Part shown: in pieces, positions 14,346 through 41,067 of the stretch
Position numbering within the stretch: the first letter of the stretch is position 1
Layout: the number at the start of each line of letters is the position of its first letter
Assembly (NCBI GenBank): GCA_907165135.1
Contig: OU015570.1
Span: 1,628,489-1,692,488 of the forward strand
Source: Oikopleura dioica
Lineage: Eukaryota > Animalia > Chordata
Direction: 5' to 3'
Length of the DNA stretch: 64,000 nt
Notes under the pieces: generated by a model
Told to the model about the DNA's origin: nothing
The model's database searches: none
The model's input: only the letters and a program-made list of their open reading frames with translations
Program-made: the position numbers and the translations under genes

Positions 14346-14352
14346 TCCCCCC
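14346..14352 (-). promoter_or_regulatory. Polypurine tract of element B (GGGGGGA)
   Basis: Abuts the 3' LTR on the minus strand. Confidence 0.8.
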
Positions 14353-19094: not shown

Positions 19095-19356
19095 GGCGAA
19101 AAGCAGTTAGGTGACTCTTTTGAATGGCGTTACCTTATTGGTGCACTCAGATTTCAATTTCGATAGGTTTCGAAATTGCTGAGTGACCTCCGTGGAGGGT
19201 TTGATTCCCGCTCAGGATTAATCCACGTGATTGGCTGTAACCACAACTTGCGTTTTCCTCTCGGCGAATTGGTCCACCAAGATGATTTTCTTCCCAAATT
19301 AGCTTCTCTAGATGGCTGGCTAGGAATGGGTGTTGTAGGACCGTGGGGTCGATTTT

Positions 19357-19367
19357 TCCTGGTACCA
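19357..19367 (-). promoter_or_regulatory. Primer binding site of element B (TGGTACCAGGA), tRNA-Leu(UAA)-like
   Basis: 3 nt from the 5' LTR; complementary to the ..UCCUGGUACCA 3' end recalled for metazoan tRNA-Leu(UAA). Confidence 0.7.
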
Positions 19368-19669
19368 GTATGTTGTGGTAACGATTTGCCTTGCAAAAGA
19401 ATCGGAGAGCAATTATCCGCGGTTTTTTATAAAAGCGTATATTAGGCTAATTTTCAAGTTAAAGAGTGAACAGAAAACGAGGCTTGCGCCGGCGAAAGTT
19501 ATGAACAGCAGGTGCACGAGGCGAATCTCCAAATAAGGGAATCGGCAGATTCGCGATCACAACAAACCTGTTTCTGAAAACACCATCTAAAAATAAATCA
19601 ACTTTTATAAAACAACTCTAGAGACTCATCATTTAGCAGACACATCTATTCAGCAGGTTACAACACAAA

Positions 19670-19687
19670 TGGTGTCAGAAGTGGGAT
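19670..19687 (+). promoter_or_regulatory. Primer binding site of element A (TGGTGTCAGAAGTGGGAT), tRNA-Leu(CAA)-like
   Basis: 4 nt after the LTR end; complementary to the ..AUCCCACUUCUGACACCA end recalled for tRNA-Leu(CAA). Confidence 0.85.
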
Positions 19688-19728
19688 AAGATATTTTCCC
19701 AGCGCCAAACCTTAGAGAATACCCACAA

Positions 19729-21891
19729 GTGAGTACAGAGATGAGATTTTTCTACTCATTAACAGATTTAGATACAGTCCTAGTCGACGCTCTTGCGATT
19801 CTAGAGAATCTTGCAGAGCTTGACCCAAAGACAAAATATGAATTTTTTAGGAGTAAGTATGAAGATAAAAAAGGACTCACAAAAGTGCCTCTGCGCTTCC
19901 CAACATCCAATTTTCAGTCAATAGTTAATTTTTACTCGTTAGATATTTCTAGACTAGTTGTAGCACCTAAGGATAAAGCACCTAAAGACAGATGCTATTT
20001 ATTTCATTCTCCAAGTACTCTAACTGATGTAACAAAATTGATTGATGACCTTAGTTAATTAGATAAAAAAATACTAGAAGGACTACAAACTCAGAACTTA
20101 GGAGACAAGCTTGTTATCCTTGAGAGGAGTATAGAGGACTTCATTAAGAGAGTAGAGGAAAACATTGATGAACAAAAGCAAAAGTTATTTGTCTCTGGCT
20201 CGGCGATGAAAGTCTAAGATGTCATTAATGAGTTTGAAGAACGTGAGCGTCTGGTTTTCAATGAAGCGTATGAAAAGGCGGCTAAAGAGTTCTCGAAGAA
20301 AACGATCATTATGGAGAAACAAGTAAGAGATCTAAAAGACACCATCGATGAGCAAGAGAATGAAATTGCGGACCTTCGTTATAATGCCGGGCTTAATGAG
20401 CAGAAGATAAGACGTCTTACCAACGAACTTGATGCTTTGAGGCACAAAGCAACGACATTTGAGCGACTTCACAAGGAAAAGTCAAAAAGAAGCCTCTAAC
20501 CCAAGAAGATACTCAACAACATCTTTCCTCGGACAAACCAGGTCGCACCATTAATTCTTGATGAGCCGGTACCACATCAAAAGAAAGATGCTCTCCAGCC
20601 GTCTCCGGCGGTAGTAAACCTTGAAACATCAGGAGATAAAGCTAATAACACGAAGCCACCTGCAGACCGTAAAAATACCAAAGACGATACGGCGGCACCT
20701 GGTCATAAACTTGAGAATGTTGACGGACATAGGGGCAACGGCCAAGCAATGAACTCAGGTCGTAAAGAGACTCGAAAGGAAGAGACAGAAAAACTAGAAG
20801 AAGACAATTCGGTTGCTAAGACCGAGAGAATGAGCCAAGAGCAGATAGAAAGACTGCAGCATCAAGTGGAGCGAATGACGCTTCTCTTTGAACTGCAACA
20901 ACAGCAGCGAGACCAGGAACTGAACAGGGAGCGAAATCGTCCAAATGAACGAGCGCGACTGCGAGCTGAAGAACCTCGATATGAAGTTGGAAGGGATCAA
21001 GGGCTGAAGGCGACCGTCAAGGCGCCAGTTTGGGCTAAGTCTTCTGATGCGAGCCAAAAAGCAAGTCATCTCAATGACTTTATAGATTCGTTGATACTCT
21101 TTCGTGAACTCTCTTTGCTCTCAGACGCGTCACTGATCTACAGTTCGCTCGAAAACTCGGGTCGAATGGACATTTTGCGTGAATTGACAAATGAGCAGAA
21201 ACGAAGTCTCCCGGAATTCATTGATCATTTGCGACGGGCTCATGGAGGATCTTCACTTTCTCATAGAGCAAGTCTTAGCTCTCTAAGACAAGGACCCACT
21301 GAATCACCACTAAGCTTTTTCATGAGAGTGATTCGAGAGTTCTATCTCTCGCGAAAGGTGCTCCCACCATCTCCGTCAGCAATCACTGAGAGAGATAGAC
21401 AAGAGGACATTCTGTACCTCTTTACAAATGGGCTTAAGAATCAAGCGGTGGCACAACATGTCAAACTTCATGAGAAGACAAGACCATTTGCAGATATTGG
21501 AAATCTGGCAAATGAGGCCGAGGAGGCAATGCAACCGTTGAAAACGCAAATGAGTGTTGTGCGAACATCTAACAGAAGATATGACAACAACGACCGACGA
21601 GATGGGAGCCGGAGACAGAGATCGCTGAAAGATATTGAATGCCATCGATGTGGTTTTAAAGGTCACATTGCCCGAATGTGTACGGCAAATCAGAAAACGG
21701 TAGGTCGTCATGAGCGTCGTAAAGAGAGAGGGCGTAAAGGCACACCCTTTCCGAGAGGTAATAAAAGAGGGCGATCTCAATCACGGTCCTCAGACCGCTC
21801 AAGAAGCAGCAGTCACACACGCTCAAGAAGCAGAGATTCCTCAAGGCGAAATTCAAGAGATTCTTCGAGAGGCAGATCAAATTCAAGATAA
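19729..21891 (+). pseudogene. gag: gag of element A (~720 codons): coiled-coil N-terminus, capsid-like core, CCHC knuckle, Arg/Ser-rich tail
   Basis: ORFs 19729, 20311 and 20749 lie in one frame broken only by TAA at 20056, 20215 and 20497; CHRCGFKGHIARMC at 21640-21681. Confidence 0.9.
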
Positions 21892-22049
21892 TCACGTCAC
21901 AGATCAAACCCCAGCTCGAGACAATCTTCTCGAAACTCAAGTAGAGAAGGGAGACGTTATTAACCGTGCTTATTAATAAGATAACAAAAAAACCGCATCC
22001 TTTCCTGTAAATTTTAACAATTAATACAACTAACCAAAACCTTAAAATT

Positions 22050-25000
22050 ATGACCCTCACAGATGTTCCTGCCTTCATGGCGGAAGCCTACTGTCTTGAC
22101 AGCAGTGGCAACCACCTGGGAGGCATGGTTTATTCAGAAGTCTTGCTTGATACGGGTGCAATGCTTGGAGCTATTGACTCACGGCACCCTTTTGCAGAAT
22201 ATGGCGTACGACATAATAGAACAATTGACATTTCGGCGTTCACAGATAAACTTACATCACAAGAAGAAATCATAACGGTAGACATTAAAATCGTGGATGG
22301 TAGAACCAAAGACGCACTTGTATCATCAGTGACACTTTTGGTATTAGATAACCTTGCTAGAGAAATAATTCTTCCATACTCAGTTATTTCAAATTTCGAT
22401 CTAAAATTTGGTCCCAGATGGTGTTATCTCTATAACAAAATTTCGGAAAAGAGTCATGCTCTGAGGCTGCTCACAGCTGACACTGTGGAAATCTCGACAC
22501 AGATTTGTTTAGAACCACAAGCGCAGCAAGAGCTGGATAACACTGGTATTCCAATTGAAACCGATGGCAGAGTTCAAATGGCATTTCTCGGAAAATATGA
22601 AGAAAGAACGGACCTCCCAGTAATCTCTCATGGAGAGAAATCGATGATCATCAATGACTCAACGGAAGTGCTAAAAATACCGGCAGGGACAAAGCTCTGC
22701 CTAATACGACCAACGTTGCAAGAGGAACGCTTGCTTGAAGACGTTGAAGAATTTCGAAATAGACCACACCTACGTAAATATCAAAACCTTGATCCAAAGG
22801 ATGTTAAAGTAAAACTAGACCATCTCAATGGCCGGCTTAAATGCATTACTGAAGAATTCGTAGAAGAATTCCATTATATATTTGCTAGAAATGACAAAGA
22901 CATTGGTCCAGGATTCCGTTTAGGATATCCCTATAAAATAAACAAAACTACTTCGCAGCCTCAACCGAGGAAGTACATTCCAGTCGCCCAGAAATACGAA
23001 GATTTTCTCCAAAATCACATTAATTCACTTGAAGATCAACGAGTAGTTGAACAGATACCCAATTTGGATGTCATCACGGCGTCTTGGGTCATAGTTCCAA
23101 AGGGCAATGATAAATTACGACCTTGTTTGGACCTCCGTCCACTAAATAATATAACCATTGCGGATAAAAATTTTCCCCTACCACCACTGCAGAGCATTCT
23201 ACAGGAGCTCTCGGGACACAGGTATAACAGTTCATTAGACCTTTCATCGGCCTTTCATCAGTTCGTTTTGCACCCAGATGACAGGCATCACTACATTTCT
23301 GTCGCCTCAGCGACAAGCCTACCAGTATCGTCGAATTCCGTTTGACGGTAGGCTTATCACCTCGTTGTTACAATCACTCATCACGATTGTGCTGGCGGAA
23401 AACGAGAAAAACATATGCTGCTATGTAGATGACATATCAATTTATGCCGACACAGCTGAAGAGCACAACGACGTCCTCAGACGGTTCTTTAACAAGCTTG
23501 GTGATGCCAATCTTGTCCTTAACCCATCAAAGACAATTCTTCTCAAAGAAAAACTAGAAATATTTGGCTACACGGTGGATCGAAACGGCTACAAGCCGTC
23601 AAAGGCAAGAATTGACAAACTTTTGACACTCTCCATACCGGAATCGTCCACTGCAATGCGCAAGGCGATCGCGACGTTTGCATATTTTCGCCCAACTTTC
23701 ATGAAATTTGCGGAAATGGCGCGACAACTGTTTGAATGGGCGCAACCTGGTTCAAAATATAATCCGAAATCGAAAGAGGCAAAAGAAGCGTGGGATGCAC
23801 TCCTCAGATGCACAGCGAACAGCGTTTTGCTTACAAAACCAGATCTCAATCAGCGTTTCACCCTTCGATCGGATGCCTCAACTTATGCTTATGGAAGCGT
23901 TCTGTCTCAACAGATTGATGGACAAGAAAGGATTATTGCTGTGGACAGTCGTCAATTCACAAAAGGTCAAAGGTCCTGGTCGATTCCGACGAAAGAGTTG
24001 TGGTCAGCGTTCTCAGCCGTTCGCTTTAACGCTAACCTGCTCACAGGGAGACGATTTACTTTGATAACGGACAATCAGTCCGTAGTTCATGTTATACGAG
24101 GAGCAAGGAACCTGGAAATAACAACTTCAAACCCAATTGCTAGATCAATCATATACTTAAATATGTTTGAAATAGATGTTAAGTGGTCTAAGGGAACTGA
24201 TGCAGATTTTCACCTTACTGACTTGCTCTCAAGAAATAAGATTCATCTTAACTCCCCAGTTAGATTAGGAACTAAGTCAAAAGAGCCAATTCTACAAGTA
24301 AAAGATATCTATGATACCTGGATTAGTGTAGACCCCCAAGATAAAGAAAAGGTGACAGATGTGGCAAGGAGGGACTACCGACAAGAATCATCAACCAGTA
24401 CTGTAATAACAACAATGAACGTGACTATTCCGGAGGCTCAGATTAAAGTAGCAGAGCTACAAAAGAAAATCAAGAAATCACAGCATGATTGCAAGAAAAC
24501 ACAAAAACGGATAAGGAAGCTTTTGAATAATGAAAAGGTGCCTGGGTTTAAGACAAAGATGGACCCGGAGATTGGACGCAATATCTTATTCAAAGGAGAT
24601 CAAATTGTTGTGCCAAATCACGAAGTTTGTAGCCTGATTGCACAATTACATAATCATACAACAAACAGGGCCATTTTACAACAGATGGAATTGCTCAATC
24701 TGTGGTTTGAGAACATGACGCGTACTATCACCGAGTTTGGACTTTCCTGTGAAATCTGCACCCGTCGGAAAGCGGTGGCTCGTCATCCAGTTAAAATTGG
24801 TCAAACGATAAACCTGGTAACTGAACCTTTCCAGCGTTGCCACTTGGACAATCTTGTTTGCAAACCCTACTACATCATGGTCGTGAGAGATCATTTCTCT
24901 GGGTACACTGACATGGCCGCCCTACATTCTGAAAAACTTGGAGACACATTGGAGACAGTGACTAAATTAATGCTCAGAATGTCGCTACCGAAGGAAGTGG

Positions 25001-25857
25001 TTTGTGATAATGCAAAAACGTTCAAAAGTGAACAATTCGTGGATATGATGACCAACTTGGGGATTGCTCTGACATACATAAGTCCGAAAAACTCAAGAAG
25101 CAATGGGAAAGTCGAACGGATAAATCGGACTATCGGCGAAAGACTTGCGACTCTGACAGGGAATAATACGTTACCGTTACTCATGACGCTATCAGAACTG
25201 GACACGATATGTGCTCTTATCGCGTTTGAGGTTAATCATACGAAGTCAAGGACGAGCAAGTTCGCACCAATTACAATCATTACAGGACAACTGCCAAACT
25301 TCGGAATTCGTCTGCCGCGGAAGGCATTTCATGCCTCTCAAGAGGCGTACATGAAGTGGCTAACAGCTCAACTTTCGCGGATCCGACAGACTCTAATAAA
25401 AGACTTAGATGAAGCAATCAATGAGGAGGCTGAAACTCTACGGATTCGACTAAAAGAAAATGACCGAGTCCGGATTAAAACTGATCCCAAGCCTGGTATA
25501 CCAAAACGAGCAAGGGAGCGATGGTCAAGTGAGACTTATAGGATTGTGAGACTTCATCCAGAACAAAATTCACTCACGATACAGAAGGAAAACGACACGG
25601 GTGATAAACGGTTGCGGGCACCAAGATCGACCGTGGCAATCGACAGAGTAAGAAGAATAACTGACGAAAATGAATTGCGAGAGGAGAAGTCGCGTGATGA
25701 AATAACAGAAGTAAATGAAGACGAAACAGCCGAAGTGAAGAAAAAGGGGGCCCCAAGGAAAAGAGTGACATTCAAAGACATCGATGAGAGAGCAAAGGCT
25801 CCGGTGAGGTATAATTTGAGAAGCAAAAGCCGGTCTGATCAGCCGACTAAGAAATAA
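22050..25857 (+). pseudogene. pol: pol of element A, one frameshift near 23290
   Basis: LLDTGA; YRRIPF..YVDDI; RSDAS..KEL..TDNQS..TDLLSR; HNH..CEIC, HLDNL..CDNAKTF..GKVER. Confidence 0.95.
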
Positions 25858-26120
25858 CTTTGACGAAAGTTCATACCACCGTAAAAGACACCGGCTTGTA
25901 AACATAAAAGAAAAACGCACTTCAAAGTAACTCATTACATAAAATTAATTTTAATTACAACCTGTCGTAAAAATGAGATCAAAGACCTTGATGTAAAAAT
26001 AACTCTGATGGTTATGGTCTTGGTCAAAGCATACACATACCGCCTGTTACCGGTACCACGCCCATCATTAAAACTTATCATATAAAGATCTCTTCAAACA
26101 AACTAAGCTCACTTCCACTC

Positions 26121-28661
26121 ATGAGACGTCAAACAAAACTAAAATGGTTCTTTTTCAAATTACTTCTAGTCATAACCGCTCAAGAGAAACCCCTCCAAAC
26201 ACAAATGGAAGAGCCAGAACTCGTTACACCAACGAGCGTGAATACAACGAGAAACCAATTGTACTCCCCAACAAACATTAAGACAAAGATAATCGCACCT
26301 TTAGGTTTAGCCCTTGTTCTAGAACCCCAAAATACTACCTTACTAATAGAAAATTACCAGCCAGTGAAAAAGATCTTTCGTTTGAACTTCCTATTTTGGA
26401 ATCAATGTTTGCTCACTGTGATGCTGAAATGCTAGAGACCATAAAAACTCAAATTGATAGCGATGAAAATTTTAAAGAGGTCTGCAAACAGGCCCTAGCT
26501 CTTCGACAGCAATTCCTAGCGGAGATTAAGGAAGAAAGTGGATATTCAAGAAAAAGGAGAACAACACAAAAAACGGTGATCTCAATCATGCAAACAAAAC
26601 CTTCTAGTGAAACTGACAACAAACTTAGATGGACACCTCACCCGAATGATGTAATATTAACAAGCTGGACTCCTCCACCAACTATAGATAATAAAAATGA
26701 TCGTGTTATTGAAATGACAGCACCGTCAATTCGCTCGACAGAGCCGCCGGAAGATAACAAGCTTAGATGGAGTCCGACGACTAAAAGGGCAACCACAACG
26801 ACAACAGAGGCGCGCGTAGTGACAACAAAACCATCGACCACAACAAGAATGACAACCACGAAATACACTACAAAGCGTACGACCGTAAAATCGGAAAATC
26901 GATCAAGAAAGCAGCCCAGAACATCAAAAACAACAACAACAACAAGACGCCCAAAGACAACGAAGCGGCAAAACACAACAAGGCGGACAACAACGACGAC
27001 AAACCGCCCAAAAACGACAAAACGAGCGGAGCCCACCACGACTAAACATAGAGAAAGGGTACTTCCAACAGTAGGCTATTTTCCGGACAAAAATGCAAGG
27101 TATCATCGAGGTACGTGCATTAAGGACAACTCTCCAGTTGACTCCTACTGGCTTGGCGAGGTTGTTGATTGCACTGCTGAAGACTGTGAATGCTGTAGTC
27201 AATACACCTGTAAGTATGGGCTTCAAGTTGAGCATATAAAAGACTTGCTAACATATATGGCAGAAAATGGGCGAGGCGACCTTCTATATAAAGCTCAACA
27301 CTTTTGTTTTGGCTCTCCAGCCTATTCAAGAAGGAAAAGATCAATGTCTATTTTTCAGTATTGGTCGCATGGGGAGCTCTCTCCCCTCCAGTATCAATAC
27401 AGAGGTGAAGAACCTCCGGGAAATGGAGGATGAGAAAATAAGCAAGTTGGCGAAACAAATGGTCACCTCAAGTGACTTGACCACTTCGATTAAAAGTGAA
27501 GATGCTAAAATAAGTCTTCTCAAAGACAGTTTATGTGTAGCCACTACTGACAATGTCAACAATCTGAGGCTCACAGAGCTTCGTCTCACCTATTCTGACC
27601 TAGCTTCAAAAATTGAGCTCGCGATAAGGCGATGCTCGGGTGGCTCACTACCCAATGGCTTGCACTATAAAGTGTTAGCTCATGCCTGCAGCCATTTGAA
27701 TCCCTCCAAGATCATTGCTTGCTCGAATCCCGAGATTCTGGAATCAATGAAATGTCAAGTAGACACAGTTCTTATTGGTGAAGATAAAATCGATGTAAGA
27801 ATCAAGGTCTTGATTCCGATATTTGTTCCGAATGAGACTATCACCTCAATTTGAACGTTTCCTTTTCTAGACCAGAGTAGGCAACTAAAACAGGTTCATG
27901 ACTTACCACGTCACATATCAGTCACAAAAACTCATATTTTCAAATCAAACTGTGACCTTCAGGATAATCGCAAATATGCGATTTGCACTCTTGCGGACAA
28001 TCTTGAGCCTTTGAATCTAAAATGTATTAATGCCATCCTTGGAGGAAATGAACACTTTATAAACATTTTTTGCAAAACAATTCCATATACTGGAGAATCA
28101 TGTCTCGTGAGTAAACTACCTAGAGGAATGGGACTAGGTGTTTGGAGTATGACCCCACTTCCAGTTTCATATAAATCGGATGTTGAAAACATGTTAGGGA
28201 AGACGATCGATGTGATTCCTCCAAATTCACCGACAATATTAACTACTTCTGGTACATTTATAACATGCTCAGGAGTACCTTTTGACGTCCCAGAAGAGTC
28301 CAAAAATATTGAACTCAATATAGTTCAGGACTTAGAGGTACACTTGCAGGATGTTCCACTCTTGGAAACGGATTTACATCTGCTTCAGAAGAGAATTTCC
28401 TCTCTGGCAGTTAAACAGGAACAAGATCACCGAAACCAAGTAAACAAAACTTCAACTCTTATTACGTCCATTTTGAACATCGAGCCTAAACATGAGGGAA
28501 CGGCTCGGATAGTTTTTAAATACTTACTACTATTTGCAATCTTAATCTTAGGATACATCTTCCTAAGATGCATATGGAACTCGTTCCAAAAATGTAAGAA
28601 AACAACTCAAACAACCATTGCTAATTTCAGAACCAATCAGATGAGAGACACGTCTGTGTAG
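26121..28661 (+). pseudogene. env: env-like type I membrane glycoprotein of element A (frameshifts near 26400 and 27390; TGA at 27852)
   Basis: Hydrophobic signal-like N-terminus; furin-type sites RKRR (26549) and RRKR (27329); Thr-rich mucin-like tract; Cys cluster; heptad-like stretch after the second site; C-terminal TM IVFKYLLLFAILILGYIFL (~28509-28577). Confidence 0.85.
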
Positions 28662-29686
28662 AATATTCAGATAAAAATCCCCAGCTTGCTTAAAGGGTAA
28701 ACTGCTTATAATTATCTTTTTTTAAATGAACGCACCTTCATATTCGTCAATTGTTATTATCACAGAAGGTTTATTAATTTTCACTAAAATGAGTGACGCG
28801 AAAACTATAAAATGCTTCTAGACCAAAGTTGAACCCATAACTGGAGTAACGATATTTGATTATTTCTTTAAATGCTAATGAAATGCTGCTTTAAGTAACA
28901 CGAGAAATCAAGGATGAAAACAAGGCTTAAAAATAAAAAATATGTATACAATTATGTGCTTATCATTACTTTTATCTATGCTGCTTGCCGTAGAAAAAGA
29001 AAAGAAAAAAAAATTAAAAATATAAATATTAAGATAAAAAAAAAAGATACGAGAAATAAAAAAAAAACGAAAAAAACCTGTACATAATGTATAATTTAAA
29101 CTCTGTTTTAACCTGCTTGTCAAGATTATCATCGTTTTGATAACCTGTATATACTGTATATAGTAATCTAACTTAATTCTTTAAATCATTATCATAATCA
29201 TCAGCTGGTGCAGAAGGATTTTATTGAATCCACTGCAAAGCTGAATTTCTTCAATTTCCACAAAGTTCAATTATAACATGAAAACAGTTCAAAGCAAATT
29301 ATTTTTCACTGCCAATTGTACATTTCTATTTTCACTGCCAATTGAAAATTATTTATTTTCACTGCCACTTGCCGACATCAAAGATCATTTTCTTTCCGTC
29401 ATAAAACTTAATTATCTTCTTTTATGTTAAAATAATTTCCCTTGCTTTATACATGAAAGCATTCTTCAATTTACAACCAGCTTTGCCACTGCCAATATTT
29501 ATATTTAAAAACTCATCAAAATCAAAAGATAGGCCAATAAGGGCCTCACCCCTCGTAAAATGTGCCACTTCAAAAAAAAAATACCACGATGTCACATCAG
29601 TTGCTCTCAACTAAATTAAAAGAAAAGAGTGAAAAACAGAAAAGGGACCTCTGTCCCGAGAAACGAAAAAAAAAAGAGAGTCAAGG

Positions 29687-30922
29687 ATGTATGAAGATGC
29701 AGTAAACAGTCTTGTTTACCAGGAAAGAAGTTTAGCGACCCACCCAAACCTGGCAAGATGGATTTCGGGACCTGGCTTCTCAATTGCAGTATTCCTAGGA
29801 AGAGTTGCGGAGAGATTCAACTTAGCAGAACCGACAATACAGCCCCAAGCGGTCAACAGATTTGTGAAGAAAACAATGCTATTTTTGCATCCTGATAAGA
29901 ACCTAGAAGTGAACGAGGAACAGAGCGAACTACGGACCCGGTTGCTTTGCGTTAAAGGGCTAGTCACGGACAATTTCGAAATCATTTCGAAAATTGAGCG
30001 CGATCTGGAAGAGAAACGAAGAAGACTACAAGAACGAAAGAGGATGAAGGAACAAAGAGAACGCGAAAAAGCCGTAAAACAAGCGCAAGAAGAAAAGCGA
30101 AGAAAGGAAGAGCAAGACAGACTTAAAAAGGAAAAGCGGGAGCGGGAGAAACGACAGGCACAGGCAAAGGCCGAAGAAGAAGAGCGTAAAAGGAAAGAAG
30201 AAGAAGATCGTAAAAGAAAGGAAGAAGAAGATCGTAAAAGAAAGGAAGAAGACGATCGTAAAAGGAAACGAGAAGAAGAAGAAGAAGAACGTAGACGAAA
30301 GGATACTCGTAAACGAGAAGAAGATGGGTCAGAACGCGAAGGTAATAAAAATAATTATGGTCAGGAACGGAACGAATGGAACGGAAGCACAGAAGGAATG
30401 GAATGGGACTCGAACACAAATGAACAATGGAACAACAGACGACGCTATGAGCGGCAAAATATGAGAACGTCACGGGAACAGGAGGCATTAAGAAGAATTC
30501 GGGATTTTAGAAGAACCATTCAAGTCCCGCCCACATCTTCGATAGGACCACTCTTGGCCTTGGAACACTGTGAGTCTTTGATGGAACAGCTTCCTCAAGA
30601 ATATACAGTTGTGTACGAAAGTGAACTTTTCTTGGTCGTCCTAAAACAAAGACTCCAAATCCAGAAAAGATGTTTCGTCAAAACGCTTCTTCGGAACAAA
30701 GAAACATTAAGGAGTATTGGGAACGTTGGAACTCTGGAACTTGGTCGGCTTGGCCCGATCAATGTGGCGAATGTAAAACTGAACGATGGCAGAACTTTTC
30801 CAATGATTCAAAATATTTTTACACTCCCGAGTTATCTTTCGTCAAGGCGCATCTCAATGCAGCCGTGGACCCAACAAATTTACAATCTTGGCGAACGATT
30901 GTACGATATCGTAGAAGACTGA
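29687..30922 (+). CDS. ORF4 of element A: 411-aa protein with J-domain-like HPD motif, charged coiled-coil repeat and unknown C-terminal domain
   Basis: Intact ORF inside the TSD-bounded LTRs; QAVNRFVKKTMLFLHPDKN (HPD at 29888-29896); near-repeated RKRKEEED units. Confidence 0.75.
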   Translation: MYEDAVNSLVYQERSLATHPNLARWISGPGFSIAVFLGRVAERFNLAEPTIQPQAVNRFVKKTMLFLHPDKNLEVNEEQSELRTRLLCVKGLVTDNFEIISKIERDLEEKRRRLQERKRMKEQREREKAVKQAQEEKRRKEEQDRLKKEKREREKRQAQAKAEEEERKRKEEEDRKRKEEEDRKRKEEDDRKRKREEEEEERRRKDTRKREEDGSEREGNKNNYGQERNEWNGSTEGMEWDSNTNEQWNNRRRYERQNMRTSREQEALRRIRDFRRTIQVPPTSSIGPLLALEHCESLMEQLPQEYTVVYESELFLVVLKQRLQIQKRCFVKTLLRNKETLRSIGNVGTLELGRLGPINVANVKLNDGRTFPMIQNIFTLPSYLSSRRISMQPWTQQIYNLGERLYDIVED

Positions 30923-31092
30923 AGGAACAAAAACGAACAACATGAATTCAGATAGATGACCCTTTTTGATTTAAGACCCTATTCATTTTTTTTCTCTGTA
31001 CACTAACCTTTATTCTATTATAACTGTATCTGAATGTACTAACCATATACCACTTTCTGAACCTGTGTACATTTCCCCCCCGGAGCCCCGAG

Positions 31093-31299
31093 TGTAGTAG
31101 CTAACTCTCGAGTGTGGCGCTCTTCGGGAGCTGACTCTATTTTTATCACTTGAATTATGATCAGAGCTCTCTCGGATCAGGACCTCAGTCCAACTTACAA
31201 CCTGTTTCTGAAAACACCATCTCAAAATAAATCAACTTTTATAAAACAACTCTAGAGACTCATCATTTAGCAGACACATCTATTCAGCAGGTTACAACA
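31093..31299 (+). repeat. 3' LTR of element A
   Basis: TG..CA termini, AATAAA, followed by the AGAT TSD. Confidence 0.95.
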
Positions 31300-32700
31300 A
31301 GATTTGACTGCGCGGTCACCAAATTATGAGAACGAAAGTCTTGAAAGTTCGCTTCGACATATAGAGCGTTTCAATCGTAAATTAACGACGAGTGAAAGAT
31401 ATTGTCACAGTGCTGTTTTTATGAATATTCGGCTCCAAAACCCTTATGTTCGAGATGAATGGACTTACCTGCGTAATGTTATTCGAAGTAAAGTTGTTCT
31501 CAGTCGCTTAGGCTATAATTATTGACACTCCCACTGATTACAAAAAAGAGCAAAAATTGAAATTCTTGCGCCGCAATGCCATGATAAAATTTCCAATGTC
31601 GAAAATTATGACTTGGACAATGATGCCGGCGTTGTTTTCAATTATATTATAAGGGAAACAGGAGTTAACTTAAAATTTGAAAATTTTTTCAGCTAACGCT
31701 CAAAGGGATCAAGAGATACCAGATTTTATTGAAGCTTGGTCGCCAAAACTCGCTGAAATTCTTCTTGGTGATACTTAGGGACTATCACGGGAGCGCGAGG
31801 GCCCAATTTTCGCTTTCCCAACTACCCGAAATAGCCATTCATTTTTCTTGATTTTTCCGACAATATATGTTTTCTTACCTGCTGATTTCAAATATGATTG
31901 AAAAATTGGCAAAAAAATATTGAATATTATGAATAATATCGAATTTATCTTTCAAAGATCGAAAAAGTATAGAGCTCGTCTTGCCTCGTCATTCTTATTT
32001 TGATATGTTCTCTATCAGACCCTTCTTTTTAATCTTTCAAAAAATAAATTTACTTGGTTCTACTAGTCGGCCACAATCATCAGATTAGTAAGCAAAAGTG
32101 ACGGCGCGCTAGTGCTTTACACGCTGCGCGGGGAGCCCGAAAAGCATTAGCGCGCGCCATAATCTCAGTGGGTGCTTGTTTTGACCCAGTACACGGAATC
32201 AGATGCAAACAATACCGGGTGATTAACACAAAAAAGTTCCCGGATTTTTTTGTATAACCTTGCATCCCTTTTAGTTTTTTTTTTTGATGGCGACCAAACA
32301 GAAAGGGAAAATAATATAAGAGGAATTCTCCAAACGATCGAATATATTTCTCAAAACTATTTAACTCATCTTGATGAAAACGAGAGTGGAGGCGATCATG
32401 GATGGTTTCTCGTTTTGGCTAGAAAAGGATAATTGACCATTTTATTTGCTCAAGAGGCTAACAGTGATGTTTGCAAGTGCCTTTGTATTTTACCTGAGCT
32501 TGAGCGCGGGTACACTCTCTGAACTCGGGTCAAGCGTATTTGACAAGACGAACTGATTTTTGTTTTGGCTTTTCATCGCGCTTGTCATAGAAAGTTTTAA
32601 ACCTGCCATAAGAGAAATTCGATCGAAGGCACTGCAATGGGCGCTGTTGAAATTTTGAACTAAGAAAATTCATTCTCTTAAAAATAAATTTGCTGCAAAA

Positions 32701-33091
32701 ATGTCGCAAAAAGAAAAGAGAATCCGCATGACATTGGCCGAGAAAAAAAGATATGCAGAGATTATAGTGAAGACGCCGGAGAAGAGTGATGCAAAGAAGA
32801 TTATTAATGGGCTATTTCGAAAGACACATGATGGAAAAGACATTTCGACGCGGTTGGAGGTGGAAGAAGTACCACAAGTTCTAGTAAGAGAAGATGCCGA
32901 CGCTGAAAAGCCATCGACTTCAAAATCGCCAAAGAAGCAGCCGAAAATAACGGTTTTTTGTTAAAAAGTAAATCTGTGAATAAAAATTGAAAAAATAGTG
33001 GCCTAAAGTTGGATTTTTTCGGATGACAGATTTCGGAGATTTTTCAAAAAAGTGGCCTGAAGTTGCTCGGCCTTAAGTTGGGGTTTCACTG
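32701..33091 (+). mobile_element. pogo/Tigger-like internally deleted remnant (duplicated at ~40016-40409)
   Basis: KRIRMTLAEKKRYAEII resembles a CENP-B/pogo N-terminal HTH; right TIR TCGGCCTTAAGTTGGGGTTTCACTG (33067-33091) followed by TA. Confidence 0.6.
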
Positions 33092-34763
33092 TATCAATGG
33101 GCAATTTATAAATCTTTCTTTGAAAAAAGAAATACGGCTTACGCGGCGTCCACCCTAGCCGCGAGAGAAATGCCTGAGGGCGAATGCAGCGCTGTGCGCT
33201 TCGCGCCGCGCAAAAATGGTCAAAAATAGACCTTCAATCGTGAATTACAGTATGTTTGTCATCTGCTTCCCAAAATTTATCAACTGAATATTTTTCACCT
33301 CAATCGAAATAATATATTTATCAAAAAATTTTCTGGGAAGCTTGTGACTAACATGTATTTAACATATATTTCCATATATCTCTTCAACCCTTTAATTTTT
33401 TTCTCTAAAATATGTTTTTAACCTTTTAACAGATATATTAAACCTGTAAAAGTTTGAAAACAATACGATTTGTCTATCAAAAGATAGTATTTTTGGGCGC
33501 GAACGCTACAAACAGGGAATCTTCAATGTCAAGAAATCTCCATTTTTAGATGTAAACTTATGTTCATCATCATCATCCATAAGTGGTTCGAAATAGATTA
33601 CGACCTCTAAAAATTTGAGAGAACTTTTCGTAAACTGGAAGATATTGTGCTCGACGTCGCTCTCTGTGAAAGTGAAGAACTTGAAGGAATTCCATGTGGT
33701 TTCCAACAAGCATTTTGAAGGAAAATTATGAATGTCCTAGGGTTAGGGTTCCGCACGATTGGACCAAAAATTTATTTTTTAATAAAATTTGGAGATTCCA
33801 CCAAAAATATGCCAAGGAACTCATTCCTGGTCTCTGTTTTCCCCAAAAATCCCCCCTTCAGCCCTTTTTAGGGCTTCAAAGTAAATTTTGCCAAAGAGGC
33901 CTGCTGCGCGCTGATTGGCTGGCGCTCGTCGCGGGAATATAAATCGGGTAATGCTAACCACCGTCGACCTGGAGTTGGCTGAGTGGTGAGCGCTTCTCTT
34001 TGCAAAGAGGAGGCGGCGAGCTCGAAGCCAGCTCGAACGCACCCCCTTTTCCATGTTTGGCTTTCTAGCTTCAACATGGAAAACGCGGATGGGCCTCGAA
34101 AAAGAAAAATTCTTTTTGAGATTCGAGCTCACGCCCGTCCGCCAATCCTTTTTGAAGGACTGCGCTCACCACTCAGCCAACAGCTACTTGGGGGGTGGTC
34201 CCGTTTACCGAGTTTCGACTCGAAATTTCCGGAGTCAAAGTTTCCGGACATTTTTTGGATTTTAATCAATCCCCCCGATTTCGTCAACTTTGACTTCGAA
34301 CTACTTTTTTTGGTCGGTTTTTAAAGGTTTTTAAAGGATGAGGGCTCATTTTGAAAATAGCAAAGTTTCGAAATCTTCAAAAATGGGATTCTCAGATTAT
34401 TAATGAATTTTCTTGAAATTTTTACTTGTTTATATTCTGCCTATTTATGATATGCTTATTATTTATTATTTTCGAAATATTTTTTGCTTTATATATTATC
34501 TGGTTATTAGAATTTAGTCATTATAAATGATAGACACTTTAAAAAAGCGAAAAATGATCAGAAATAGCATCATTTGGGCCCAATTCTGATGGAAAATTTT
34601 TATTTTTGAAAAAGCGGCCAAATTTAAGCTTTCTATAGAGCCCTTATTCGTCTAATTCTATCGACTCTCAAAAGTGGAAAAATTGCGGGACCCTGCGAAA
34701 TTGAGTGAAAGAAAAAAGAGAAGTTATAACGACATAGTGATTTTCAGAATTTACATTTTAAAT

Positions 34764-37097
34764 TTACTGTGGAACAATGACAGATTTTTTAAATTTTCGC
34801 GGTATGAGCGCTAGCTGGCGTTGGTCTTCCTGTAGGCTTCTTCTTTTTCTCTCTTCGCGCTGAGTTTTCTGGCTTCTAAAAGCCGCCATCAGCTTCGATT
34901 CTGCTTCGTGCGGCTTAAGATCATCCAGCCATTCATTCAGCTTGTTAAATTTGGCTCGCCCGTTTTCGTACATCTTTTCGTGGCATAGATTTTGGATTGA
35001 TTTCTCAAATCCCTTGAGAGTGGCGAAGGACGATTCTTAATTAAATTCAGATATGCTTTATTCAAAAGAAAATTACCGACTGCTCTGTTCGAGCAACTAA
35101 TTTTTCTGTCGTCTGGCAAGTTCAAATTCTTTAGAAGCCCGAAATCCTTCATGTATTTCTTCAGACTTCCACCGACAACAGCAACAGCAACAGTGTTCAG
35201 TCGCTTGATTCTTGTTGCGGAAACCTTCTGGAATCTTTCTTCAATCAGTTCCACGGTTTTTAGATTCCTCGGATGAAGACATCAGAGCCGCCTGATCCAA
35301 AAGACACGAATACGGCTCGTTTGAATCAACAATCGTCTTCATTCGCTGAATCACTGACTGGAACAAGTCTTTCAATCCCAGGAAAGACAGAGCTTCGTTG
35401 TTCACCTTTGAGATCTTCTTGTGGAAATGATTGATGTTCGCGCAGTAGTTCAGGAACAATGTTGCAGCGTCGAGCAAAACCCCATTATCTCGACCGGAGC
35501 AAAGTTTGTGGATCTGGTGAAACTTGCTGTCCTCAAAACTTCTTGTCATCATGTGCTTTGTCGCGTTCATCACCGTCGGAAAATGTCTCACAAGAGCGCC
35601 CGAGTTGCGACAGTCATTACCGAAGCGCTTGCCTATTAACATTAATTGAGAAAAATCATTCGAAGGAAGTTACCTAGATCGTGAGAGAAAATCTTTGTTC
35701 TGGTGCTCTCCAAATCGTATTTAAGAAGCAGCTGAAGCGATCGGCGACCATCCTGTTGGACGTACCCAAATTTTTCTGGTTTTCCGAAGACACTCTTCAC
35801 AAGTTCCAGTAAGGTAAATGCTTCTTCATTGACCTCTTTTAACGCAGAACAGCTGTTCTTGTCGCAGTTCGAAACGCAGTGCATCGCACAAAAGAGTGAT
35901 GGAGGTGCTTCCTTGTTGATTTCCCGCGTCAGTTTTTCTGCAACGATTGCGTTTGCGTTGATTTGAGCTGACTGCTGGTCAGACATAAGGAGATCAATCT
36001 TCTCGCCGATGACTCGTCCCAAACTGGTCTTGTTTATGATCGCAATCATTTGGTCGGCAATTATTTGACTTGTACCTCCGATCGAACGCTCGGTTCCGAT
36101 GAGATGAAGCTTGCCAGACTCGTCTATCAGCCCGACTGAAATCGTTTTGGATGCATCTAACATGGCTGCGCCGTCACTTGCGAGGTGGAATCGTTTGCCT
36201 TTAAGAATGACATCTTTGGTGTGCTCTTCGTTCAAATACTTCAATGAATCACGAAGTCGCTCAAACCAGTCAGGCGATGGAACTCTTTTTTCTTCGCCCA
36301 GAAGCTCGGGATAATACTTTGCTGTCGTTTTAAAGAAATTGTGGATGCTACTTGCTGTTTCTCCTTTAATAAGCATTTCCAGCGACAAGTTGATAAATTT
36401 GGGACTCCAAGTTCTGTTATCACCACCTTTTCCGTTACTAGGAAGTTTCCCGCTGCGAAGAAAAATATCGGTGATCGGCGATTTATCTTTAACCAGTTCC
36501 GGCTCATCATTTGCTTCCTGGATTTTGTCGACAACTTCATCTTCTTGGATTATTTCTTCTGATTCAGGCATCCATTTTTCCTCAAGCTCACCAGAATCTT
36601 CAATGAACACCTCGTTCATTTTGTCGTTGTTGTCTTCGTTGATTTCAGTCGTTTTCAATATTTGCGACAGACCAGTCGATCGGGTTCCAAGATCTTTCGC
36701 CGCAAAAGTAACGCAATCTTCCTTCGAAAAACTCGTTTTCGATTCGAAACCAGTGCTCAAGGTCTCGACGAACCTGATTTTTTCTTTGTCAATTTCATTC
36801 CTTTCAAGCAATTGTCAAAGACAAGTTCTGGTTGGTTTGTGATGATGTCTATGAAGGAGGATAGAAAAAATAACTTAGATGTATCATACCTTCGAGATAG
36901 GGAATTATCGCTGAATAAAATCCAGAAGTGTTTCTCGAATGTTTCTTTGCAATTTTCTCCAATTCTTCGGAATTCTCTAATATAGTTTCGAGGTATTCTC
37001 TTGAAAAGCCGGTGAATCGGACTTTCGTGTTGGAAGGCTTAATAATAAGCGGTGCGCGAAGGAACTTCATAAAAGATCGCTTGTTGAAAGAAAACAT
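34764..37097 (-). pseudogene. hAT-like DDE transposase with two 41-nt introns (36849-36889, 35633-35673) and about three frameshifts
   Basis: LASDG (D1), LMSDQ (D2), FCAMH (CxxH), DLG|KRF joined in frame by splicing; SNRAVGNF where the catalytic E is expected. Confidence 0.8.
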
Positions 37098-37363
37098 CTT
37101 GACGATAAAATTGAGAAAATTTACTCGCTCAATGATTCAAAAATTCGAATGAATTTTATTGCGTTAAAAAGTTAGGCTGAAATTGTAATCTAGAAAAAAT
37201 TAAGTTTTCGAGAAAAAAATGCTTTTTAATTTCTAGAACTTCTACGTCAAGAAAAGACTGAGACAGCACATCAAGCGCAAGAACAGAAACTTTATTTGAA
37301 AGAGAGTAGAGTTTCTTAAAGAAGAGACAGCTATCATTTTTCGCCCCTAGTCCCCCTATTTAA

Positions 37364-37790
37364 GGGATCCCCCGATCTCACCAACTTTGACCTCTATCTA
37401 CTTTTTTGAGCTTACGTAGCTGGTTTTGGGCGCATTAGAAAGCCCGCTTCGAAAGGAGCAAATTCTGGTAGAATCAGCTTGCCAGCAAAACATTCGCTTA
37501 TGCATTAGAGGCCGTCAAAGTGATTAACATTTTGAAAAATGGCCATTTTAGGTCATTTTTAAATCGTATCTACTTTTTTTGGGCTTTGGGATTCAAAATC
37601 TTTTTCGTTTATCTAAAAGTATAGACGCTAATCTTTATTTTTTGGTAGAATCAGCATGATCGGATAAGTTAAGAAACGCGACGAATGTTTTTTGCACAGT
37701 TGGACAGTCACTGGCGATAAACTTGGTGGATAGATACTTCTGCAGGTCGATTTGCACTTTGAGAGGGGCATTAGACCAAAGTGAGGGGTT
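37364..37790. mobile_element. Partial copy of the TTAA-flanked GGGATC MITE family inside hAT copy 2
   Basis: TTAA|GGGATCCCCCGAT..; same sequence as one end of 43825-44509 and as 50768 onward; far end not delimited. Confidence 0.6.
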
Positions 37791-38247
37791 GAATTTTGAG
37801 GCAGTTTTTGGATTTTTTTAATTATTCTAATAAGTTCTTTCTGGTTTCATAAGAATAATCATTCTTCCGTTATAAGAGGGCCTCCAGAGGCTGCTTCGTT
37901 TTTAACCAATCAGAGCGCACCTAGCTTTCTCACGGCGATTCATAACAAACTGCTAGAATTAAAACTACCAGCACAAGAAAACGGTGAATTTTTAGAGAAA
38001 CTTTCAAAAGAAAAATGATTTTTTATTTTATCGCTATCATAATTTGGCAACGCGAAGTTTGTGCTGCCACTAGAAGTATGAAAAACCGAGAGAAATCGGC
38101 GACTCCGATGGTGAATCGGAATATTAATATCATCATTTTTTCGCCGTATTCGAAAACCTAAACTTTATAAAAGTCAATTCTTAATACAATAAGGATTTGG
38201 ATTTTGAAAAATAAGGTCCTCCAATCGTGCGGAACCCTACCTAGGGT

Positions 38248-39320
38248 TATTGTCTACTACGTCGTTAAGTGAACTCGTCTCTTCCTTTGTGTGGGCAGCA
38301 TTCCATATGCCATACACATTCGTTACCTTTACTTGATGATGGAGTGATGGCATAGTAAATTTTTGTGACTTTCCGAAAATTCACCTGGACCAACAAAGGA
38401 CACATTTGATTCAAGACCGATCCAGTCTTTGACAAAAAATTAAAATAGTTCTTTGCCTGCAGGTTTATGTCTTTGCTATTCTCATAACAAACGAGGTTTC
38501 TTCGGAAGGGTTCCTCTCGTGTCCATTTCGAGAAATGTACCTCTCGTGTCCATGCACCTCTCGTGGCCATATACCTCTCGTGTCCATATACCTCTCGTGG
38601 TCATGACGTAGAGACTTGCGATCACGGAGCATTTTGATGATAAGTTGGGTCTCCAAGCATTTTTTCAAGGATACTATGAGAAGGTCCTTTTGATTGAGTT
38701 AAAATTTCAATAGTTTCAAGTAAGAATAAGTAAATTTATTTGCACAAACCAGACAAAATTCTCTTTAGAATAAGAGGCAAATGTATGAGGGTACTATATT
38801 TAATATAGTTATCTTTTTCAGGTTTTTCGATTAAACAAATTGTTTTCATCAATTCATCTCGATTTTTATTCATATAAAAACTTAATTTATGACCTCTTAT
38901 TATAAATATATAAAGCGTGTAAGCACTCTCTTTGAGGAAATTGGGAGACCCTAAGTTTCATAAGCCGGTGAGTAATGACCACGAGAGGTATATGGCCACG
39001 AGAGGTGCATGGACACGAGAGGTACATTTCTCGAAATGGACACGAGAGGAACCCTTCCGATTTCTTCGAGAGAATTCAGGAAGATGTGGAGAGAATTGAA
39101 CGTTTAACACGACTTGCTGGTCTGCGTCGGTGTAATATGTGTGTTTGGTGCTATTCGTGAGGATTATCCCCAAATTCTGTAAGTTTGCGGTTCCGGATCT
39201 GGTAAAGTTGAGAAGTTGTAGAATGATGCATATTATGCTGGTCAAATTATTTTCTAGGCCGCAAATCATATCGGCGTTGAGGGTCTGTGTCTTCAGAAAT
39301 CTGTAATGGGGAATTATCAA
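38248..39320 (-). pseudogene. env: env N-terminal fragment of element C (duplicated at ~42317-43390), continuing past the hAT at ~33500-33735
   Basis: Signal-like IICIILQLL; QNLGIILTN..; frame is continuous after removing the MITE (..PEFSRRN|LVCYENS..); MECC Cys cluster; RERRR after the hAT. Confidence 0.55.
38502..39060. mobile_element. 559-bp MITE with repeat-containing TIRs and 5-bp TSD TTTCT (second copy 42572-43130)
   Basis: TCGGAAGGGTTCCTCTCGTGTCC.. / ..GGACACGAGAGGAACCCTTCCGA; CCTCTCGTG repeated 4-5 times per arm. Confidence 0.85.
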
Positions 39321-41067
39321 TCGGGCAATAATCGAAAGCCGTTTAAACTTCCTTTTCGATTGGGAATTTACTTGGTTCTACTAGTCGGCCACAATCATCA
39401 GATTAGTAAGCAAAAGTGACGGCGCGCTAGTTCTTTACACGCTGCGCGGGGAGCCCGAAAAGCATTAGCGCGCGCCATAATCTCAGTGGGTGCTTGTTTT
39501 GACCCAGTACACGGAATCAGATGCAAACAATACCGGGTGATTAACACAAAAAAGTTCCCGGATTTTTTTGTATAACCTTGCATCCCTTTTAGTTTTTTTT
39601 GATGGCGACCAAACAGAAAGGGAAAATAATATAAGAGGAATTCTCCAAACGATCGAATATATTTCTCAAAACTATTTAACTCATCTTGATGAAAACGAGA
39701 GTGGAGGCGATCATGGATGGTTTCTCGTTTTGGCTAGAAAAGGATAATTGACCATTTTATTTGCTCAAGAGGCTAACAGTGATGTTTGCAAGTGCCTTTG
39801 TATTTTACCTGAGCTTGAGCGCGGGTACACTCTCTGAACTCGGGTCAAGCGTATTTGACAAGACGAACTGATTTTTGTTTTGGCTTTTCATCGCGCTTGT
39901 CATAGAAAGTTTTAAACCTGCCATAAGAGAAATTCGATCGAAGGCACTGCAATGGGCGCTGTTGAAATTTTGAACTAAGAAAATTCATTCTCTTAAAAAT
40001 AAATTTGCTGCAAAAATGTCGCAAAAAGAAAAGAGAATCCGCATGACATTGGCCGAGAAAAAAAGATATGCAGAGATTATAGTGAAGACGCCGGAGAAGA
40101 GTGATGCAAAGAAGATTATTAATGGGCTATTTCGAAAGACACATGATGGAAAAGACATTTCGACGCGGTTGGAGGTGGAAGAAGTACCACAAGTTCTAGT
40201 AAGAGAAGATGCCGACGCTGAAAAGCCATCGACTTCAAAATCGCCAAAGAAGCAGCCGAAAATAACGGTTTTTTTTGTTAAAAAGTAAATCTGTGAATAA
40301 AAATTGAAAAAATAGTGGCCTAAAGTTGGATTTTTTTCGGATGACAGATTTCGGAGATTTTTCAAAAAAGTGGCCTGAAGTTGCTCGGCCTTAAGTTGGG
40401 GTTTCACTGTATCAATGGGCAATTTATAAATCTTTCTTTGAAAAAAAAGAAATACGGCTTACGCGGCGTCCACCCTAGCCGCGAGAGAAATGCCTGAGGG
40501 CGAATGCAGCGCTGTGCGCTTCGCGCCGCGCAAAAATGGTCAAAAATAGACCTTCAATCGTGAATTACAGTATGTTTGTCATCTGCTTCCCAAAATTTAT
40601 CAACTGAATATTTTTCACCTCAATCGAAATAATATATTTATCAAAAAATTTTCTGGGAAGCTTGTGACTAACATGTATTTAACATATATTTCCATATATC
40701 TCTTCAACCCTTTAATTTTTTTTTCTCTAAAATATGTTTTTTTAACCTTTTAACAGATATATTAAACCTGTAAAAGTTTGAAAACAATACGATTTGTCTA
40801 TCAAAAGATAGTATTTTTGGGCGCGAACGCTACAAACAGGGAATCTTCAATGTCAAGAAATCTCCATTTTTAGATGTAAACTTATGTTCATCATCATCAT
40901 CCATAAGTGGTTCGAAATAGATAACGACCTCTAAAAATTTGAGAGAACTTTTCGTAAACTGGAAGATATTGTGCTCGACGTCGCTCTCTGTGAAAGTGAA
41001 GAACTTGAAGGAATTCCATGTGGTTTCCAACAAGCATTTTGAAGGAAAATTATGAATGTCCTAGGGT

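Follow-up and report, generated by a model that had tools for sequence, protein, structure and literature searches.

An intact open reading frame after env in a Ty3/gypsy-type element of Oikopleura dioica: a candidate accessory gene

The window analysed here, a stretch of 64,000 nt of Oikopleura dioica DNA, contains a retrotransposon in which an intact open reading frame, ORF4, follows gag, pol and an env-like gene. What kind of gene is it, did it move with the element, and what does the HPDKN motif in the N-terminal region of its product mean? A preliminary description had taken this motif as the mark of a J-domain. We propose that ORF4, known from one copy, would be a lineage-specific accessory gene ("additional ORF") of an env-carrying Ty3/gypsy-type element and would encode a nuclear regulator, an explanation to which we give about an even chance.

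The outer element is a gag-pol-env LTR retrotransposon of Ty3/gypsy type, with paired TG..CA LTRs, a target site duplication (TSD) and a primer-binding site. It spans 14042-31299, and its LTRs and genes lie on the plus strand. Direct reading of the sequence gave two identical copies of the 4-bp TSD AGAT, at 14038-14041 on the left and at 31300-31303 on the right. The 3′ LTR (31093-31299) is 207 nt long, starts with TG, ends with CA and carries an AATAAA at 31226-31231. A nested element sits inside the 5′ LTR and splits it in two. The first piece, with the TG start, is at 14042-14151; in self-comparison 14039-14155 matched 31090-31206 at 94.9%, and the piece itself differs from the 3′ LTR by 5 mismatches in 110 nt. 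The second piece, with the CA end, is at 19565-19665 and matched 31199-31299 at 99%. Compared with both pieces together, the 3′ LTR shows 6 mismatches. The matched LTRs and TSD of the preliminary description thus stand, with the amendment that the 5′ LTR is split at 14152-19564. A PBS-like 18-mer with a TGG start was read directly from the plus strand at 19670-19687, 4 nt past the 5′ LTR. The polypurine tract just 5′ of the 3′ LTR is poor, so the interval between env and the 3′ LTR may be rearranged. Searches of the window for a tRNA gene, an Rfam match, a recognisable host gene and a second copy of the outer element found none.

The nested element (14152-19564, minus strand) is a younger Ty3/gypsy element of 5.4 kb, with LTRs of 194 nt and the TSD AACC flanking both sides. 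In self-comparison its LTRs, 14152-14345 and 19371-19564, were 99.5% identical. It encodes a gag with a CCCH finger, PR-RT and IN, and Pfam returned RVP, RVT_1, rve, Integrase_H2C2 and CCCH for its minus-strand ORFs.

The three canonical genes of the outer element are all broken. The gag gene (19729-21891) contains 3 in-frame stops and a CCHC zinc knuckle, for which the zf-CCHC match (E 0.0019) is slightly short of the Pfam cut-off. The pol gene (22050-25857; PR-RT-RNase H-IN) is divided by 1 frameshift into two ORFs in two frames. Its Pfam domains appear in the order RVT_1, RT_RNaseH_2, RT_RNaseH, Integrase_H2C2 and rve, that is, with a Ty3/gypsy-type RNase H and an H2C2 finger. The env-like gene (26121-28661) has 2 frameshifts and 1 stop. 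It was recognised from its ORFs and its architecture: a signal-like N-terminus, a T/S/P-rich mucin-like stretch, two R-x-K/R-R sites, a C-terminal membrane anchor and a short tail. Compared by sequence with Pfam and PDB, the env pieces showed no similarity, including to F-type or gB-type glycoproteins. With a split 5′ LTR and all three of these genes broken, this copy of the outer element is dead.

ORF4 is intact. As the preliminary description had stated, it is a 411-aa ORF between env and the 3′ LTR, inside the LTRs and the TSD; it occupies 29687-30922 on the sense (plus) strand, with its ATG at 29687 and its stop codon at 30920-30922, after the end of the env-like gene at 28661 and before the start of the 3′ LTR at 31093. 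For its composition, stop codons are expected at ~6% of codons. A run of 411 open codons would on this expectation be far beyond chance, and so would the roughly 260 codons of its two non-repetitive ends by themselves. The codon-position composition of these ends is similar to that of pol and env. Read from the sequence, ORF4 is supported as a genuine coding sequence. Its intactness is another matter. With 7 lesions in gag, pol and env over about 8.5 kb, about 1.0 lesion is expected in ORF4, and the Poisson probability of none at this density is about 0.36. Calculated from the LTR divergence under neutrality, the probability of no nonsense change is about 0.35. The intactness of ORF4 in this copy therefore needs no selection and is weak evidence only, a caveat that had been raised before and that holds.

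The ORF4 product has no membrane segment and can be divided into three main parts. The N-terminal region (aa 1-110, 29687-30016) contains HPDKN at aa 68-72 (29888-29902). The segment at aa about 105-215 (29999-30331) is rich in E, R and K. Part of it consists of 4.5 tandem copies of a 24-nt unit at 30173-30282, detected by TRF, and it contains basic clusters; across the whole of ORF4 there are 7 K/R runs of four or more. This segment had been described as a charged coiled coil. It is 82% charged, with 63 opposite-charge pairs at i/i+4 and 5 hydrophobic residues in 111, which makes it a polyampholyte or single helix of the ER/K type rather than a heptad coiled coil. The C-terminal region (aa 262-411, 30470-30919) was modelled by AF2 from the single sequence with a pLDDT of 36.9 and had no match in Pfam, NCBIfam, PHROG or PDB. 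It corresponds, at about 150 aa, to the C-terminal domain of no recognised family that had been noted previously.

Between env and ORF4 lies an AT-rich non-coding spacer (28662-29686, plus strand) with no ORF of 80 aa or more. It contains an A-rich tract at 28992-29076, 26-nt units with a CCAAT core repeated in tandem at 29303-29371, an extra copy of the CCAAT core at 29482-29496 and a TATA-like run at 29500-29510. This spacer may be a putative internal promoter.

Relatives were found for pol and env, and none for ORF4. The pol product is 52% identical to its relative P0001. The region downstream of that pol is 31-51% identical to the env-like region, and the contig carrying it, which holds the sole close pol relative, ends inside env. 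Its silence on ORF4 thus carries no weight. Among metagenome contigs, the pol alignment recovered one distant locus at 28% identity. Word-indexed homology searches with aa 1-110 and aa 262-411 of ORF4 gave no match. An exhaustive phmmer search with aa 1-112 against 1.84 billion representative proteins found no relative, and the lone match covers only the start of the charged segment. The ORF4 domains gave nothing in metagenome, viral and prokaryotic genome contigs, and exact look-ups of ORF4 and two pol ORFs of the window returned no record.

Most likely, ORF4 is an accessory gene that travelled with the element, since it lies inside the LTRs and the TSD, on the sense strand and after env, and bears no marks of later insertion. 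This upholds the earlier claim. We consider it quite unlikely that ORF4 is foreign to the element, that is, a later separate insertion or a host gene fragment captured in this copy alone, which would make it uninformative on the biology of the family. Several features could be read in that way: the 1-kb AT-rich spacer with its A-rich tract separates ORF4 from env, the polypurine tract is poor, and relatives of ORF4 are absent despite a pol relative in the database, although the related contig stops before it could include one. The interval between env and the 3′ LTR is also bracketed by a weak inverted pair of 15 nt (28659-28673 and 31027-31041), but 8 pairs at chance level occur in 2.9 kb, this one among them. 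Against a separate origin, no LTR pair, direct-repeat TSD, convincing TIR or poly(A) tail was found around ORF4, and its composition matches that of the element. A Tc1/mariner-like transposon was rejected, as a transposase domain is absent and the inverted pair is at chance level. A LINE-mediated retrocopy was also rejected, as no poly(A) tract lies 3′ of the ORF.

According to the preliminary description, aa about 33-105 at the N-terminus of ORF4 form a divergent J-domain whose HPD recruits host Hsp70 for particle assembly or uncoating, or for counter-defence, a reading that we judge unlikely. HPDKN, with the HPD at aa 68-70, follows an amphipathic basic stretch, and this part of the N-terminus gives a gap-free alignment with helix II and the HPD loop of two J-proteins, one of them DNAJB8. 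The chance expectation of HPDKN is 6.6e-5 in ORF4 and 0.0024 over all long open stretches of the window. This is low for a single ORF, though not across a scan of many windows for any famous short motif. The motif was also the reason why ORF4 was picked, and the J-domain scores are therefore not independent of the selection. DnaJ (PF00226) was the sole Pfam family returned for the N-terminus alone, but it scored 12.1 bits, below the gathering score of 27.8 bits, at E 0.22 and over profile positions 14-37, just 24 of 63. The full-length protein gave nothing in Pfam at E≤1, and a 70-aa cut gave no match. Against J-domains in PDB the N-terminus reached E 0.3-0.5, with few identities beyond the five motif letters, and when HPDKN was removed the flanks matched nothing. 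An AF2 model made from the single sequence without an alignment placed the HPD in a loop between two predicted helices at a pLDDT of 45.8. Of the earlier "basic helix-LHPDKN-helix", the motif is thus present, and the helices come only from this low-confidence model. Foldseek with the same model returned nothing at E<1 in PDB or in the viral fold library BFVD. Among the weak PDB matches J-domain chains are over-represented, at about 11 of the top 50 with TM 0.32-0.40, none of them significant; in BFVD there was no J-domain protein of note, and polyomavirus T antigens were not returned. A literature search for a retroelement-encoded J-domain found none. Taken together, the profile and fold searches leave the J-domain claim not supported, though not refuted: at present the candidate domain is a motif, HPDKN is insufficient to call the N-terminus a J-domain, and the hijacking of Hsp70 would rest on that motif. 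It would be surprising, in our judgement, if the N-terminus proved to be a true, fast-evolved J-domain and the fourth gene of the env-carrying Ty3/gypsy element thus to be one for an Hsp70 co-chaperone of its own.

A winged-helix alignment over the same residues scores higher. The NCBIfam DtxR profile matched aa 38-87 with 17.2 bits and E 0.0028 over profile positions 28-76, its DNA-binding part. In a control with ten ORFs of the same element, the best E was 0.05. IdeR in PDB aligned with the N-terminus at E 0.3-0.8, with about 32% identity evenly spread over 47 residues and one gap. In the DtxR/IdeR alignment HPDKN falls at the wing turn, and this alignment and that to the J-domain are mutually exclusive. 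The N-terminus would then be a winged helix-turn-helix of the DtxR/IdeR/MarR kind and ORF4 a nuclear regulator of the element that binds nucleic acid, and the basic clusters and the charged spacer would suit a nuclear protein. We regard this as doubtful. The score is far short of the family cut-off of 290 bits and reflects local similarity to the helix-turn-helix and wing only, and the significance becomes about 0.01-0.03 once the four searched libraries are allowed for. No Pfam HTH family was returned for the N-terminus, and the AF2 model, at low confidence, has no strands at the supposed wing. DtxR-type domains are a bacterial family, and phmmer found no eukaryotic relative among the 1.84e9 representatives.

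The accessory-gene reading is the one that we prefer. ORF4 is a sense-strand ORF within the element and outside gag, pol and env, as additional ORFs are. For its route of expression, nuclear location and regulatory role we infer the following mechanism as the most likely. ORF4 would have come in with the element at integration, in the interval between env and the 3′ LTR. Its message would be sub-genomic, either spliced or starting at the region of the CCAAT repeat and the TATA-like run about 180-380 nt upstream, and would end at the AATAAA of the 3′ LTR. The protein is predicted to be soluble and modular, with a small N-terminal helical domain, a long ER/K-rich spacer and, at the C-terminus, a further domain of about 150 aa. 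Its basic clusters may bring it into the nucleus, where it could act on the element's own expression, through transcription or RNA handling, in the manner of the post-env genes of complex retroviruses and of CERV. Judged by composition and by analogy, the product is probably a nuclear regulator.

If ORF4 is conserved across copies, the element would be a Ty3/gypsy element with a four-gene layout like that of complex retroviruses, which is uncommon, and the few known accessory factors of retroelements would gain an orphan protein. A true J-domain would make it the first retroelement-encoded Hsp70 co-chaperone. What we have at present is a single dead copy in which the orphan ORF is intact and contains a suggestive motif; this is not yet a discovery. 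That ORF4 belongs to a known kind of gene, the lineage-specific accessory ORF, seems to us an evenly balanced proposition.

To our knowledge, the J-domain strategy is known among viruses mainly from the T antigens of polyomaviruses and is undescribed for any retroelement. Like these T antigens and Hsp40/DnaJ proteins, ORF4 has HPD-K-N after a basic amphipathic stretch near its N-terminus; unlike J-proteins, it stays below the gathering score of the DnaJ profile. With DtxR/IdeR it shares the local alignment over the helix-turn-helix and wing, and it differs from them in lacking the metal-binding and dimerisation domains. In complex retroviruses (delta-, spuma-, epsilon- and lentiviruses), the genes after env encode small nuclear regulators expressed from a sub-genomic message or an internal promoter. 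By analogy, they share with ORF4 the position between env and the 3′ LTR and the mode of expression that would be expected for it. However, by type the outer element is Ty3/gypsy (Metaviridae) and not Retroviridae, and our searches gave no homology between ORF4 and these genes.

Closer comparisons come from Ty3/gypsy and other LTR elements. The outer element resembles the metazoan "errantiviruses" (PMC13524379) in its gag-pol-env order, Ty3/gypsy pol, short LTRs and tRNA primer-binding site; in both, env has a furin-type site and an anchor at its C-terminus. It differs in that its env has no F-type or gB-type similarity detectable in Pfam or PDB, and a fourth ORF is not described for these env-carrying elements in PMC13524379. 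CERV of the C. elegans element Cer1 is nuclear and regulatory and has no homology outside its genus (PMC10309623). Compared by description, CERV and ORF4 are both 3′-end accessory proteins of Ty3/gypsy elements, of about 400-500 aa, with basic NLS-like motifs and without homology beyond a narrow clade, the nuclear regulatory role of ORF4 being only a putative one. The message for CERV is spliced from five exons and has exons in common with gag, and CERV takes the position of env, whereas ORF4 is a single ORF past a separate env-like gene (PMC10309623). Catalogues for plants and bdelloid rotifers list additional ORFs (aORFs, or diverse ORF3s) of LTR retrotransposons (PMC7264820, PMC5408684). 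Most described aORFs replace env, whereas ORF4 is additional to an env-like gene and brings the number of genes to four. Like ORF4, these aORFs are extra sense-strand ORFs located after the canonical genes and before the 3′ LTR, and many of them are lineage-specific and have no recognisable homology (PMC7264820, PMC5408684).

Comparison of the window with itself and direct reading of the junctions place ORF4, the 411-aa ORF that follows env, inside an LTR element. The 3′ LTR (31093-31299) is 207 nt long, starts with TG and ends with CA. The 5′ LTR, located in the same way, is divided (14042-14151 and 19565-19665), and 6 of its 207 positions differ from the 3′ LTR. The TSD AGAT, read directly, flanks the element on both sides (14038-14041 and 31300-31303), so the matched LTRs and TSD of the preliminary description are right. 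A TGG-initiated, PBS-like 18-mer begins 4 nt past the 5′ LTR; we presume that it resembles the complement of the 3′ end of tRNA-Leu, a resemblance that serves as a lead only.

A younger Ty3/gypsy element on the minus strand (14152-19564) sits within the 5′ LTR and splits it, a point absent from the preliminary description. This nested element has CCCH-gag, PR-RT and IN domains, 194-nt LTRs with one base different between the pair, and its own TSD, AACC. Its gag finger is CCCH, not CCHC, and its LTRs have ends similar to those of the outer element. When it is left out, the outer element measures about 11.8 kb.

Pieces of the broken genes of the outer element were searched separately, with frames unjoined, and breaks are reported as counts. 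Pfam found a CCHC knuckle in gag and, in pol, RT, Ty3/gypsy-type RNase H, an H2C2 finger and an integrase core, in that order. For the third gene, homology was detected neither with Pfam nor by sequence search of PDB. Its architecture is envelope-like: the start is signal-like, a T/S/P-rich stretch, two R-x-K/R-R sites and scattered cysteines are present, and near the C-terminus one strong membrane segment is followed by a short tail. There are three in-frame stops in gag, one frameshift in pol, and two frameshifts and one stop in env. With gag, pol and env broken and the 5′ LTR split, this copy is dead.

Nested transposable elements make up the whole window, and no host gene can be recognised in it. 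Near-identical direct repeats occupy 32047-43439 (32047-34891 and 39365-42205, 99.1%; 38131-39369 and 42201-43439, 99.5%), and each 1.24-kb unit holds an 81-nt inverted repeat. In its arrangement this region resembles a non-autonomous LTR element arrayed as LTR-internal-LTR-internal, or else a local duplication. Further decayed Ty3/gypsy remnants lie at 43800-51350 and 56493-58354; the former has an RNase H ORF on the minus strand (45518-46222), the latter a CCCH-finger gag and aspartyl protease on the plus strand. Also counted among these remnants are LTR-like repeats, which pair 37354-37669 with 50758-51081 (direct, 93%) and 43931-44513 with 50764-51346 (inverted, 82%). A satellite-like tandem array of ~150-nt units, 62-98% identical to each other, spans 4519-5116. 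The 264-nt arms of an inverted repeat (410-673 and 1455-1718), 98% complementary and 781 nt apart, may belong to a small TIR element or a foldback.

ORF4 (29687-30922, plus strand) is open for 411 codons from its ATG. This is far beyond chance, because about 6% stops are expected among random codons of its composition, and it is still far beyond chance when the purine-rich repetitive middle is excluded. Both ends show normal coding periodicity and a third-position composition like that of pol and env. At the lesion density of gag, pol and env, about 1.0 lesion is expected in ORF4, and the probability of no nonsense change, calculated from LTR divergence and its own codons, is ~0.35. The original caution that intactness is weak evidence was correct.

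Residues 1-110 of the protein have ordinary mixed composition and include the motif HPDKN (aa 68-72). Residues ~105-215, described earlier as a charged coiled coil, are 82% charged; they contain 63 opposite-charge pairs at i/i+4 and just 5 hydrophobic residues, and part of this segment is a 24-nt tandem repeat. Its sequence is that of an ER/K-type polyampholyte or single helix, rather than a coiled coil. An N/W/G-rich linker and a C-terminal region of ~150 aa follow. The protein has seven runs of at least four K/R, and it has no membrane segment.

The 1 kb directly upstream of ORF4 has no ORFs and includes an A-rich tract. A 26-nt tandem repeat of 2.6 copies (29303-29371) has the core CACTGCCAAT, which holds CCAAT; a further copy of this core (29482-29496) adjoins a TATA-like run (29500-29510). 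Together they lie 180-380 nt 5′ of the ATG and resemble a promoter or enhancer; an internal promoter is possible. An AATAAA is present in the 3′ LTR (31226-31231). We found no LTR pair, poly(A) tail or target duplication by which ORF4 could be recognised as inserted later. The full ORF4 interval is enclosed by a 15-nt imperfect inverted pair, but this pair is one among eight of its kind within 2.9 kb.

The N-terminus of ORF4 had been read as a J-domain that recruits Hsp70 through HPD. With the full-length protein, Pfam gave no match at E ≤ 1. When residues 1-110 were searched alone, DnaJ was the one family matched, at 12.1 bits (E 0.22; gathering score 27.8) and within profile positions 14-37 of 63. 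A 70-residue cut gave no Pfam match, and the residues before and after HPDKN, searched separately, gave no match. The best PDB sequence matches included the J-domains 2dmx and 2ej7 (E 0.3-0.5), aligned with helix II and the HPD loop in register and with few identities beyond the five motif letters, and also IdeR chains (E 0.3-0.8), whose ~32% identity is evenly spread over 47 residues. The latter belong to a rival reading of the same residues, a DtxR/IdeR-type winged helix in which HPDKN would form the wing turn. The NCBIfam DtxR repressor model matched at 17.2 bits (E 0.0028), with aa 38-87 aligned to its DNA-binding helix-turn-helix and wing; ten antisense ORFs of the same element, run for calibration, reached best E values of 0.05 and 0.076 against the same library. 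The match is nominally significant (~0.01-0.03, allowing for the four libraries tried), but it is far below the family cut-off, and the Pfam HTH models did not match the N-terminus.

A single-sequence AlphaFold model of the N-terminus (pLDDT 45.8) has helices at 33-43, 53-65 and 77-111, with HPDKN in the loop between the last two. With this model, Foldseek returned nothing at E < 1 from PDB or the viral library, and no T-antigen-like proteins from the latter. About 11 of the top 50 PDB matches were J-domain chains (TM 0.32-0.40); Foldseek scores residues too, so these matches are not independent of HPDKN. The J-domain and winged-helix readings are mutually exclusive, and neither is established. 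No test that we ran supports the J-domain and Hsp70 reading, which has an equally good rival. We regard a J-domain as unlikely and a winged helix as doubtful; the fold is slightly more likely than not to be neither.

A search of the word-indexed database gave no relatives of either end of ORF4. An exhaustive HMMER pass over 1.84 billion representatives found none for aa 1-112, the sole match being to the start of the charged segment, and none were found in metagenome, viral or prokaryotic contigs. By exact look-up, neither ORF4 nor the pol ORFs of the window are on record. One close relative, P0001 (52% identity), was found for the longer pol ORF; all other pol matches are at most 28% identical. 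The 5022-nt Logan contig that carries P0001 (L001, SRR29245574) also holds env-like sequence, 31-51% identical to the outer env. As that contig stops within env, the position of ORF4 is not visible there. It is the only close relative of the element, and its pol and env, too, are called as several ORFs, so this may likewise be a decayed copy or else an assembly with errors.

The intact ORF in an LTR element is confirmed, with a split 5′ LTR and a spacer that is not a coiled coil as amendments. Most probably ORF4 is a genuine accessory ORF carried by the element, and such ORFs are of a known kind; this part of the earlier interpretation was reasonable, and the J-domain part found no support. 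Varied extra ORFs are known in LTR retrotransposons of plants and bdelloid rotifers (PMC7264820, PMC5408684). Ty3/gypsy elements with env occur widely among metazoans; no fourth gene is described in a survey of these elements (PMC13524379). In C. elegans, Cer1 encodes CERV, a nuclear protein that regulates the export of genomic RNA and has no homology beyond its genus (PMC10309623). Together with these precedents, the basic clusters, charged spacer and post-env position of ORF4 suggest that its protein would have a nuclear regulatory role and would be expressed from a sub-genomic message. A further precedent comes from complex retroviruses, which place regulators after env, and ORF4 is like these in its position.
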